Source: Pseudomonas aeruginosa PAO1
Lineage (GTDB): Bacteria; Pseudomonadota; Gammaproteobacteria; Pseudomonadales; Pseudomonadaceae
DNA length: 64,000 nt
Direction: 5' to 3' (one strand)
Assembly (NCBI RefSeq): GCF_000006765.1
Contig: NC_002516.2
Made by a program: the position numbers and the translations under genes. Below, in pieces: positions 3,478-6,436 of this stretch; within the stretch, counting starts at the first letter, position 1, and every line of letters starts with the position of its first letter. Below the pieces are notes generated by a model. The model did not search any database, was not told the origin of the DNA, and saw nothing but the letters and a program-made list of their open reading frames with translations.

Positions 3478-3558
3478 TTCAGGGTCAAGCCAACCTTAGG
3501 TAGGGTCGGCGCGGCGCAACGGCCGAACTTGTGGCGCATGGAAACAACCAGGTGGAAC

Positions 3559-4407
3559 ATGAGCGATATGAACGAAACGAAGGACAGGGTTGCCGACGCT
3601 CCCGGCAAACGCGCCTTGCTGGAGGCGGCCTTGCGCCTGGGCAGCAGCAGCCGCAGCCTGGGGGCCATCGGCTTGCGCGAGCTGGCGCGCGAGGCGGGCC
3701 TGAATCCGAACACCTTCTATCGGCATTTCCGCGATATCGACGATCTTGGCCTGACCATGATCCGCGACATCTCTACCCAGCTGCGCCAGCCGCTGCGCCA
3801 GCTTCGCCGCGAGGCCGCGACTCGTGCGGCGCCCGGCGCCCGAGCGCAGACGACGCCGTTCGGGCTGGACCTGGAAAGGGGGCGGCGGGTCTGCCGGGAG
3901 ACGGTGCGGCTGTTCTTCGACTTCGTGGAGAGCAATCCCGCCGCGTTCATCGTCGGCGTGCGTGAACTGCATGGGGCTTCGCCGGTGCTGCGTGGTGCCC
4001 TGCGTCAGATCATGGATGAGTTCGCCGAGGACATGTCGGAGGACATCATCGAATTCAGGTTGTTGCCGGCGGTGAGCGAGGCGACCATCCGTCGCCTCTC
4101 CAGCCTGATCGGCCGCCAGCTGTTTCAGTTGTCGCTGGACTATATCGGCCAGCCGGAGCGGCGTCGGGAAATCTGCGCCCTGGGTGAGGAACAGATACTG
4201 CTGTTGTTCACCGGCGCCGCGGTCCTGCAGATGATGGGCGTTTCGTTGGACGCCGAGGCGTCAGGCCAGCTTGAGCAGGCTCATGCCGGCCAGCAGCAGC
4301 AACAGGCCGAGCCAGCCGCGCCAGGCCAGGCGCTGGCCGAACAGCGCCCAGCCCATGGCGACGGTGGCGAGGATGCCGAAGCCGCCCCAGATCGCATAGG
4401 CGAGTGA
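3559..4407 (+). CDS. TetR-family regulator (FabR/DesT-like)
   Basis: HTH region [27 protein letters not shown]; the C-terminal 49 codons overlap mdtI on the opposite strand; start could be 3559 or 3568. Confidence 0.85.
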
Positions 4408-4590
4408 CAGCTCGATGTCCTTCACCGCCTGCGCCAGCGCGGTGAAGGCGGCCATCACGCAGAGGATCGAGGCGATCCCGAGGCCGCGCCTGCGGAAACC
4501 GTCGGAGTATTTCAACAGCAGGTTGGCGACGACCTCGAGGGCGATTGCCAGGCCGAGCCAGGCGAAGGGAATCCAGTTCAGGGTCAGCAT
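4261..4590 (-). CDS. mdtI: SMR-family efflux subunit (MdtI-like)
   Basis: 109 aa, four hydrophobic segments, conserved TM1 Glu (LEVVAN), [10 protein letters not shown]; paired with the upstream SMR gene. Confidence 0.8.
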
Positions 4591-4952
4591 GTGACGGCCT
4601 CCCCACGGGACTGCGCCGGCGTGCCGCTGGCGTTGCGGGTGCCGGACTTGATCAGCAGGATGCCGGCGATCATCACGCCGAGGCCGACGGCCTTGTACAG
4701 GCCGATGCTTTCGCCCAGCCAGGCGACGCTGACCGCCGTGATCAGGACGATGCCAATGCCTTCCCAAAGGGCGTAGGCGACTCCGACGGGGACACGCTTG
4801 ACCGCCAGGGCGAGGAAGAAATAGGACAGGCCGATCATCCCGTACATCAGCAGCATGCCTGCGACAGGGGCGTGGGTGGCGGCCAGTTTCATCGAGGTGG
4901 TGCCGATCACTTCGGCGCCGATAGCCAGTAACAGATAGATCCAGGAACGCAT
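4584..4952 (-). CDS. mdtJ: SMR-family efflux subunit (MdtJ-like)
   Basis: [18 protein letters not shown] and [11 protein letters not shown]; longer C-tail typical of MdtJ; 122 aa. Confidence 0.8.
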
Positions 4953-5080
4953 GTTGCCCTCCCATGGGCACCGCGGAATGGAGGCCGCGGCCAAAGATGA
5001 CGAAGAGCGGTGGCGAGGGGCGGGAAAGACCGCGAAGCGCAGGGGCGGTCGCCACCGACAGCAGGTGTCGAGGGAGGGAG

Positions 5081-5167
5081 CTAGAGGTCGCCGGTCCAGT
5101 GACGCTCGTGGGAGACCAGACGGGAAGTGGGGAGAGGTAATGCCTTGGTGTTCAACATAATGAACAT
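5081..5167 (-). CDS. Putative 28-aa leader peptide upstream of mdtJI ([28 protein letters not shown])
   Basis: Minus strand reads CTGAGGTAATATC-ATG...CTC-TAG; GAGG RBS; below the ORF-track size cut-off. Confidence 0.55.
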
Positions 5168-5300
5168 GATATTACCTCAGGGCATCGTAAAAAGCCAATC
5201 GATAGGAATTGACTAATTATTTCCTCCGTAAAATGGCGGATTCAGAAACGGTAGTCGAAACGGAGGCTTTTCCGTGTGCAATATCCTGTTCTTCTCTCGA

Positions 5301-5328
5301 ATAAGAAACGCCAGGCGGGGCCTGGCGT
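5301..5328 (-). terminator. Intrinsic terminator after the metal-binding protein gene
   Basis: ACGCCAGG-CCCCG-CCTGGCGT followed by TTCTTAT on the minus strand. Confidence 0.65.
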
Positions 5329-5360
5329 CGGGGGCGGAGCGGCACTGGCGGAGGCGGGCT

Positions 5361-6197
5361 TCAATCGGCGAAGGCCAGTTTGTCCTTCCAGTATTTCTCC
5401 AGTTTCGCGGTGTCGTGGTCGCTGGGGTGGAAGCCCGGCCGGTAGTAGTCCAGGTAGGGCAGCAGCAGGCGGGTGAAGAAGCCCTTGCGCAGGCCGAACA
5501 GGGTGCCCAGGCCATGCTTCCAGGAGCGCCAGTTGAACAATTGGCCGTCCTTGCGTAGCAGGTCGAGCTGGAACCAGCCGATGACGCCGAAGAACATCAG
5601 GGTGGTCAGCATCATCACCAGAACCCGGGTGAAGTAGCCGCCGTAGACTTTCTGGTACACATCGTAGGCGACGTTCTTGTGTTCGTTCTCCTCGATGGCA
5701 TGCCACATCCACAGCTTGTACATCTTCGGCGACTGCATCTGGATGGTCAGGTCTTCGCGCTTGAGCAGCTGCGCGGCCATGGTCGCGGTGAAATGCTCGA
5801 GGGCGCAGGTGATCGCCAACTGGTGTTTCCTGGTGGTGACCTTGCTGACGTTTTCCAGCAGGACCTTGATCCGCAGTTCGAGGCACTCCAGGTCGACCCC
5901 GTGCTCCTCGGCATATTCGTTGTAGGCGGCATGCTCCTTCGAGTGCATCGCCTCCTGGCCGATGAAGGCACTGACGTCCTTCTTCAGTTGCGGATCCTCC
6001 AGGCGGTCGCGCACCGCGCGTACGCTATCGACGAAGAATTTTTCGCCGTAGGGGAAGAGCGAGGACAGGTTGTTCATGAACTGGGTCATGAAGGGTTGGC
6101 CGTCCCACCAGTACTTCGGGGTTTCGCTGAAGCTGAAATCCATCCGCCGCACGGGGAAATTGGCGCGAACCGGGGAGGCGGTGCCAGTGGCAGTCAT
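5361..6197 (-). CDS. Predicted metal-dependent hydrolase family protein (ferritin-like, ExxH motifs)
   Basis: PVRRMDF, FPYGEKFFVDSVR, GQEAMHSKEH and WHAIEENEHK motifs; AAGGAG RBS before MTATG; 278 aa. Confidence 0.75.
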   Translation of the reverse strand: MTATGTASPVRANFPVRRMDFSFSETPKYWWDGQPFMTQFMNNLSSLFPYGEKFFVDSVRAVRDRLEDPQLKKDVSAFIGQEAMHSKEHAAYNEYAEEHGVDLECLELRIKVLLENVSKVTTRKHQLAITCALEHFTATMAAQLLKREDLTIQMQSPKMYKLWMWHAIEENEHKNVAYDVYQKVYGGYFTRVLVMMLTTLMFFGVIGWFQLDLLRKDGQLFNWRSWKHGLGTLFGLRKGFFTRLLLPYLDYYRPGFHPSDHDTAKLEKYWKDKLAFAD

Positions 6198-6436
6198 GGC
6201 TAACTCCTTTTGTTGTTCTGGGGAGGGGAAACGCACAGGTTTCCTCGGGTTCCCTATGGCGAGTTCGCTATAACACCTCTGAATGTGTCATTAGCTGATG
6301 TAATTATTGCAGGATTGTCCAACAGCGGGAGGTCATTCCTGGCCATTTCGAAGTCATTAATGGCCAGGTCGGCTCGACCAGACGGAAGATGGGGCGCAAG
6401 GAGCGAGCGCGGGGCGCCAGGGCGCCCCCCGGCGTA

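Follow-up and report, generated by a model that had tools for sequence, protein, structure and literature searches.

A short reading frame upstream of the exporter genes mdtJI (PA1541-40) of Pseudomonas aeruginosa PAO1 is probably the Pseudomonas orthologue of mdtU, a translated upstream ORF (uORF) of 25 codons that would act in cis to control mdtJI by the steps set out in the Discussion. It is located on the minus strand at positions 5158–5081 of the 64,000-nt stretch of PAO1 DNA analysed here (the window; PAO1 coordinates are obtained with an offset of 1,674,000, which was constant when checked on PA1541 and PA1542). As a tentative possibility we propose further that mdtU is nearly leaderless and sits at the 5′ end of the transcript with its start inside an operator of the repressor PauR. 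A single module of 230 nt would then receive two polyamine inputs, release of PauR and a nascent-peptide pause which unmasks the mdtJ Shine–Dalgarno (SD) sequence. The substrate exported by MdtJI is spermidine; in P. aeruginosa, stress tolerance and susceptibility to antibiotics are influenced by polyamine balance.

Results

Position and start codon of the leader ORF

A sequence-only reading of the window had described an unannotated leader peptide of 28 aa, running on the minus strand from an ATG at 5167–5165 to a TAG at 5083–5081. These coordinates were borne out, and the gap between the uORF and mdtJ is exactly the 128 nt given there (5080–4953; mdtJ ATG at 4952). The frame was also said to use codons rare in this genome, and in the 34 long high-GC3 ORFs of the window TTA, ACT and ATT do occur only 0.13, 2.1 and 2.3 times per 1000, respectively. 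It is indeed unannotated: both the 28-aa peptide and the 25-aa form described below are absent from a collection of ~15 billion predicted proteins, in which E. coli MdtU (YdgV) is present.

The proposed start fared less well. A GAGG sequence is found at 5178–5175 on the minus strand, followed by seven bases and then ATG 5167, but the roles of ribosome binding site and start codon assigned to these letters are not upheld by comparison, since neither element is conserved in other Pseudomonas species. The position of the ATG (5167–5165), 2 nt after a −10-like box, is occupied elsewhere by ATG, GTG, TTG, CTG, GCG, CCG or TCG. That of the GAGG, which falls between the conserved −35 and −10 boxes, reads GAGC, CAGC, ACGG and others. 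The pair was therefore rejected as a conserved start and ribosome binding site. In P. aeruginosa itself it would be a good conventional start if transcription begins further upstream. The conserved start is the second ATG (5158–5156), from which the peptide has 25 aa instead of 28 aa, and this ORF of 25 codons plus TAG (5158–5081) is found at 65/65 Pseudomonas loci. No purine-rich SD sequence precedes the conserved ATG in any species compared. The stop codon (5083–5081) is TAG in all 42 distinct Pseudomonas sequences, in 15/15 enterobacterial loci and in E. coli; TAG is a minority stop in the window, where it ends 5 of the 34 long ORFs.

The reading frame is under selection for its peptide

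The comparison included loci with an mdtJ orthologue from a scan of one genome per species (64 Pseudomonas, one Entomomonas and 15 enterobacterial loci). Loss of the frame in related species would have spoken against the uORF; it is open at the same place in 65/65 Pseudomonas mdtJ loci. The Pseudomonas peptides follow the pattern MLN..(variable)..SRL[VA]SRE[RN]HWTG[DG]L-TAG, and the end ...RE[RN]HWTG[DG]L-TAG is common to all 65. Conservation is concentrated in the C-terminal 15 codons (5128–5084), which include the Trp codon at 5098–5096. When these codons were compared pairwise among the 42 distinct Pseudomonas sequences, synonymous differences outnumbered non-synonymous ones in the uORF frame (3286 versus 1999), whereas the other two frames gave 195:4903 and 560:4591. 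Variable positions within this segment fall 13 times on the third, eight times on the first and seven times on the second codon position. The in-frame excess of synonymous changes points to selection on the peptide and not on the DNA or RNA alone. Judged by this substitution pattern, the uORF is a gene rather than a chance ORF.

Relationship to MdtU of the Enterobacterales

The suggestion that the leader resembles mdtU stands: position, size, the C-terminal motif E-x-H-W-x-x-x-L-stop, the TAG codon and the pairing between post-stop sequences and the mdtJ SD all match enterobacterial MdtU. Alignment of the Pseudomonas leaders with MdtU, which had been named as a check, confirmed a C-terminal motif common to both groups. 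A profile built from 11 enterobacterial MdtU peptides only was also run on the window, whose six frames contain 1,471 segments from stop to stop, and returned the uORF as its top match (E 0.052, 9.9 bits; next best 1.1), with an alignment reaching the last residue of both the uORF peptide and MdtU. From sequence alone this similarity to E. coli MdtU is short and modestly significant; together with position, size and stop codon it becomes convincing. We thus regard the Pseudomonas uORF as an MdtU orthologue because of its conservation at the same place, the in-frame synonymous pattern and its rank in the profile search.

The enterobacterial peptides end in ...SSEH[YH]WC[GS][AE]L-TAG, and the motif shared by the uORFs can be written E-x-[HY]-W-x-x-x-L-stop. 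Within it the Trp at −5 from the C-terminus is invariant across Pseudomonas, Entomomonas and Enterobacterales, and the Glu at −8 is kept in at least 90% of this family. E. coli MdtU (YdgV, b4777) has the sequence MDNLFRTLFSTFTHLRTSSTILLVGEQHWRNAL, 33 aa encoded by 34 codons, with a TAG stop 106 nt before mdtJ. Neither E. coli MdtU nor the P. aeruginosa peptide has a match among NCBIfam models.

Two lineages of Entomomonas, which also belongs to the Pseudomonadaceae, encode the uORF peptides MFFYEISFAFSLFSMKYHWTGDI and MSIQKNSFISTSCFLISLEYCWRGGR. These end with I or R before a TGA or TAA stop while keeping Trp(−5), so the mechanism appears to be independent of release factor RF1 and of a terminal Leu. 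TAG as a universal, RF1-specific feature of the family was accordingly discarded as a candidate. The Entomomonas loci (L085, L087 and L088) come from low-GC relatives and offer natural variants that are useful for judging which features matter.

Translation of the mdtU uORF, the requirement of its start codon for induction by spermidine and Rho-dependent termination within the leader have been established in E. coli (Adams et al. 2021, eLife, PMC7815308). The same authors traced MdtU in 17 genera, all of them Enterobacterales, by looking for a short ORF (20–40 aa) on the mdtJ strand that lies less than 300 nt upstream of mdtJ. The Pseudomonas uORF, with 25 aa (28 from the first ATG) and a stop 128 nt before mdtJ, falls within these limits. 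The leader had been thought not to be described in this species, and our literature search found no report of MdtU in Pseudomonas nor of a leader peptide for PA1541.

The two leaders are alike in several respects. Both contain a short uORF on the mdtJ strand (25 aa in Pseudomonas, 33 aa in E. coli) which stops 128 or 106 nt before mdtJ, respectively; the E. coli peptide ends in EQHWRNAL-TAG, matching the conserved C-terminal motif of the Pseudomonas peptides. Each leader also has, at the stop or behind it, a pyrimidine tract that pairs with the SD of mdtJ, and the mdtJI genes that follow are orthologous. They differ in that the N-terminal halves are unrelated, and in that the E. coli uORF begins 70 nt after the transcription start site (TSS) whereas in Pseudomonas the end of the conserved, putative promoter is 10 nt from the AUG and a PauR-type palindrome extends over the start codon. 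Finally, function has been proven in E. coli while the Pseudomonas uORF is known from its sequence.

A post-stop tract pairs with the mdtJ Shine–Dalgarno sequence

Only 2 nt after the uORF stop lies the sequence CCCUCCC (5078–5072, minus strand), an anti-SD that is the exact complement of the mdtJ SD GGGAGGG (4963–4957). The latter is near-invariant in Pseudomonas and is located 4 nt before the mdtJ ATG. The 7-bp helix CCCUCCC:GGGAGGG is present in the MFE fold as well as in the centroid fold, where it closes off the spacer. MAFFT left the mini-constructs ungapped, whereas the register of the helix shifts by 0–6 nt between clades, and the pairing was therefore evaluated by a register-free helix search together with cross-clade duplex energies. 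In 81/81 loci this search recovered an uninterrupted helix of 6–12 bp, one arm of which begins 0–6 nt behind the uORF stop while the other, the SD, lies 3–8 nt ahead of the mdtJ ATG; for 52 of these 81 leaders, no other stretch pairs better with the SD than the post-stop tract. The letters of the helix differ by clade while pairing is kept: CCCUCCC with GGGAGGG in Pseudomonas, AUCUCUCAU with AUGAGAGAU in Proteus, UUCUCCUG with CAGGAGAA in Xenorhabdus, UCUCCCUGA with UCAGGGAGA in Serratia, CUUUCUUCUGC with GCAGGAGAAGG in E. coli and CUUUUUCC with GGAGAAAG in Entomomonas moraniae. Since pyrimidines dominate every anti-SD tract, the matrix of cross-clade duplex energies is only partly diagonal. 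In one Entomomonas locus the helix behind the stop is weak.

Over its full length, the leader does not fold more stably than shuffled sequence (z −0.17). Outside the pairing tracts the spacer is not conserved, and its length ranges from 59 to 285 nt across the loci. The upper extreme is found in Pseudomonas sp. 30_B, where an insertion of ~130 nt extends the spacer to 285 nt versus about 150 and the SD is weakened to GGAGGG.

In P. aeruginosa the spacer (5080–4953, minus strand) is rich in C and poor in G (57 C, 33 G), which makes it a candidate Rho loading region. Its C/G ratio of 1.73 falls in the top 1.9% of 128-nt windows on the same strand, and windows of 78 nt between 5163 and 4956 give ratios of 1.5–2.7. 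No intrinsic terminator was found in the spacer. The composition of the leader thus fits that of a Rho loading site. An Rfam scan of positions 4200–6300 at E values up to 10 gave matches far below the gathering scores and none in the leader, which argues against a guanidine or other riboswitch there.

A conserved, putative promoter immediately upstream of the uORF

Two boxes with the character of a sigma-70-type promoter precede the uORF on the minus strand. The −35-like box TTGGCT (5198–5193) is replaced by TTGACT, TTGCCA or TTGCCT elsewhere and keeps its position in 65 Pseudomonas loci. The −10-like box TAATAT (5174–5169) reads TAATTT, TAACAT or CACAAT elsewhere and conforms to nAnnnT in all Pseudomonas species. 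The two are 17–18 nt apart in the 65 Pseudomonas loci, all of which keep a fixed distance of 10 nt from the end of the −10-like box to the conserved ATG; the Entomomonas uORFs too are preceded by a −10-like box (TATAAT or TAAAAG), with 9 nt between its end and the ATG. A scan with the sigma-70 consensus flagged no promoter and the boxes are weak by this measure (8/12 matches), so that it is their conserved position alone which identifies the putative promoter.

Conservation stops ~70 nt upstream of the uORF and the flanking genes differ between species. In PAO1 a terminator-like hairpin (5329–5307, minus strand), made up of a 10-bp stem and then a T-run, lies behind the upstream gene PA1542, and an mdtU-mdtJI transcript would therefore need a promoter of its own at about 5300–5160. 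Taken together, the differing flanks and the hairpin suggest that the module carries its own promoter. From the spacing of the boxes, transcription is predicted to begin ~3–5 nt before the AUG, resulting in a nearly leaderless uORF; with 3–5 nt ahead of the AUG this would not be a classical leaderless mRNA. No TSS entry for PA1541 or the corresponding PA14 tags appears in the supplementary data of Gill 2018, of Wurtzel 2012 or of the phiKZ dRNA-seq paper.

An AT-rich block directly ahead of the −35-like box, TTAATTAGT...CTATCG (5219–5200, minus strand), is conserved in P. aeruginosa and in loci of the P. putida group, whereas the nitroreducens and resinovorans groups lack it. This block may serve as an UP element or be bound by a second regulator.

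The start codon lies within a probable PauR operator

An 18-nt palindrome, TGTTCA-TTATGT-TGAACA (5166–5149), covers the uORF start codon and is unchanged in nearly all of the 65 Pseudomonas loci. It is the sole match to TGTTCA-N6-TGAACA in the 64-kb window, where 0.07 would be expected. PauR, a polyamine-responsive repressor of the XRE-cupin type, represses PA1541-40, as seen from derepression in a pauR mutant by RNA-seq and RT-qPCR (Trouillon et al. 2021). Polyamine control of these genes is thus already known at the level of transcription, a point that the sequence-only reading had missed. The fifth-listed PauR peak from DAP-seq in the same study spans PAO1 1678921–1679403 with its summit at 1679170, and such sites were mostly found in core promoters (Trouillon et al. 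2021). Converted to the window, the summit falls on position 5170, i.e. at the start of the uORF. Boxes of the TGAACA and TGACCA types occur in the puuA-puuD region of E. coli, and the half-site TGAACA of the palindrome resembles these boxes; this, along with the published peak and derepression at PA1541-40, likens the locus to those controlled by the XRE-cupin polyamine repressors PauR and PuuR. Considering the near-invariance of the palindrome, its uniqueness in the window, the DAP-seq summit and the puuA-puuD boxes, we infer that it is probably the PauR operator. An operator at this place would explain why codons 1–3 (MLN) are invariant.

Genes around the leader

The mdtJ gene (PA1541; 4952–4584, minus strand) encodes a subunit of an SMR spermidine/multidrug exporter, 122 aa long and 52% identical to E. 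coli MdtJ. Its best NCBIfam family is MdtJ, with 116.8 bits, which is below the cutoff of 122. The start of mdtI (PA1540; 4590–4261, minus strand) overlaps the mdtJ stop; the product is 63% identical to E. coli MdtI and exceeds the cutoff of the NCBIfam MdtI equivalog (169 bits versus 103). Upstream, PA1542 (6236–5361, minus strand) is a predicted metal-dependent hydrolase (Pfam PF10118, E 4e-95) whose longest ORF begins 39 nt upstream of the start annotated in PAO1.

Discussion

We have combined the present data with published findings in a model for the regulation of mdtJI. In a first step, a sigma-70-type promoter would fire ~3–5 nt before the uORF AUG. With the palindrome as PauR operator this would happen only once polyamines release PauR, whose binding and repression are published. 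The uORF, the coding nature of which is apparent from its substitution pattern, would then be translated without an SD sequence. In the default state CCCUCCC is expected to pair with the mdtJ SD GGGAGGG, as conservation and the clade-specific sequences of the helix suggest, leaving mdtJ untranslated; by analogy with E. coli and from the base composition, Rho would terminate transcription on the untranslated C-rich leader. At high concentrations of polyamine, the presumed ligand, the nascent C-terminus E-x-H-W-x-x-x-L may slow termination or release at the stop codon. When a ribosome holds the last sense codon in its P site and the stop in its A site, ~9–10 nt beyond the stop lie in the mRNA channel, according to toeprint geometry. 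A lingering ribosome would consequently shield ~9–10 nt past the stop, that is the whole P. aeruginosa anti-SD, such that the SD becomes accessible, translation of mdtJ sets in and Rho is kept out. Rapid termination would instead let the helix re-form; mdtJ would stay silent and Rho could act on the naked C-rich RNA.

Three other explanations have to be weighed against this model. Conservation of the leader might reflect DNA and RNA elements only (promoter, PauR operator and anti-SD), the open frame being incidental. The first three codons do sit within the palindrome and the region following the stop would be an RNA element, but we give this next to no credence in view of the 3286:1999 ratio in frame versus 195:4903 and 560:4591 out of frame and of a frame that stays open in 65/65 loci. 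Moreover, the C-terminal motif is common to Enterobacterales and Entomomonas even though the nucleotide sequences are unrelated. A functional peptide could in turn be a small protein acting in trans, for instance as an accessory or regulator of the MdtJI pump. This reading draws on the detection of E. coli MdtU/YdgV as a protein (Weaver 2019, cited in Adams 2021) and on the hydrophobic middle (LFLSAIL) of the enterobacterial versions. We regard it as very improbable, since the Pseudomonas peptide is polar and lacks a membrane segment, conservation between orders is limited to the C-terminal residues and their exact spacing from the stop, and the stop is tightly linked to the anti-SD.

More serious, if still unlikely in our estimation, is the idea that the conserved uORF is translated without sensing anything: each terminating ribosome would open the helix, coupling would be constitutive and the polyamine response would come from PauR alone. 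Both the repression by PauR and its binding at the mdtJI promoter are published, and the anti-SD sits where any terminating ribosome would cover it. Constitutive coupling, however, needs no specific peptide, yet the last ~15 residues are under selection at the amino-acid level, and different orders share Trp(−5) and Glu(−8). In E. coli, furthermore, the uORF is required specifically for induction by spermidine. For these reasons we favour the model in which the nascent MdtU peptide takes part in the polyamine response.

SpeFL and TnaC are arrest peptides that sense a metabolite, halt the ribosome on or beside their stop codon and keep Rho from acting. Like them, MdtU is encoded by a short leader ORF ahead of a gene for polyamines or amino acids; the C-terminal part of the nascent chain is conserved and includes a key aromatic residue, its distance to the stop is fixed, and the spacer that follows is C-rich and untranslated. 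The same analogy was drawn for MdtU by Adams et al. 2021 (PMC7815308). It does not extend to sequence similarity, of which there is none, and the clearest conserved RNA feature of the Pseudomonas leader is the masking of the SD and not a mapped rut site. The leader also resembles the translation attenuation of ermC, cat and cmlA, in which a sequestered SD is freed by a stalled leader ribosome: there too, a ribosome that pauses on the leader ORF can reach the 5′ arm of an anti-SD:SD helix. Those systems differ in responding to an antibiotic inducer and in stalling the ribosome at an internal sense codon, whereas the mdtU anti-SD follows directly on the stop codon and its helix encloses a spacer of 59–285 nt.

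The uORF adds a missing small gene to Pseudomonas annotations and extends the range of the MdtU family from the Enterobacterales to the Pseudomonadaceae. For PA1541-40, control by PauR was all that was known before. What is new is the putative promoter and operator over the start codon in Pseudomonas and a rule for the anti-SD that holds family-wide. A near-leaderless start within a repressor operator, as predicted here, would be an unusual arrangement. The analysis also singles out a constrained core, consisting of Trp(−5), Glu(−8), the position of the stop and the anti-SD immediately after it, that lends itself to specific mutational tests. The mechanism of E. coli MdtU was listed as undetermined in a 2025 review. 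If the two-input module is true, the anti-SD fixed 0–6 nt after the stop, along with Trp(−5), would give a first concrete mechanism for the whole MdtU family.

Two further observations concern regulators. An ORF of the TetR family (3529–4407, plus strand) converges on mdtI and overlaps its last 147 nt on the opposite strand. Its product has a Pfam TetR_N domain at residues 30–73 and resembles FabR in NCBIfam at a score below the cutoff. It adjoins mdtJI only in P. aeruginosa and P. paraeruginosa. A member of the same family, AcrR, binds the mdtUJI promoter in E. coli according to the literature. In the E. coli mdtU promoter (at about 1071–1080 of the E. coli locus, L002), the sequence GTGTTCAAC directly follows the published TSS, 278 nt before the mdtJ ATG. 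GTGTTCAAC holds the same TGTTCA/TGAACA half-site as the Pseudomonas palindrome, and this may be a hint of an input by PuuR in E. coli.
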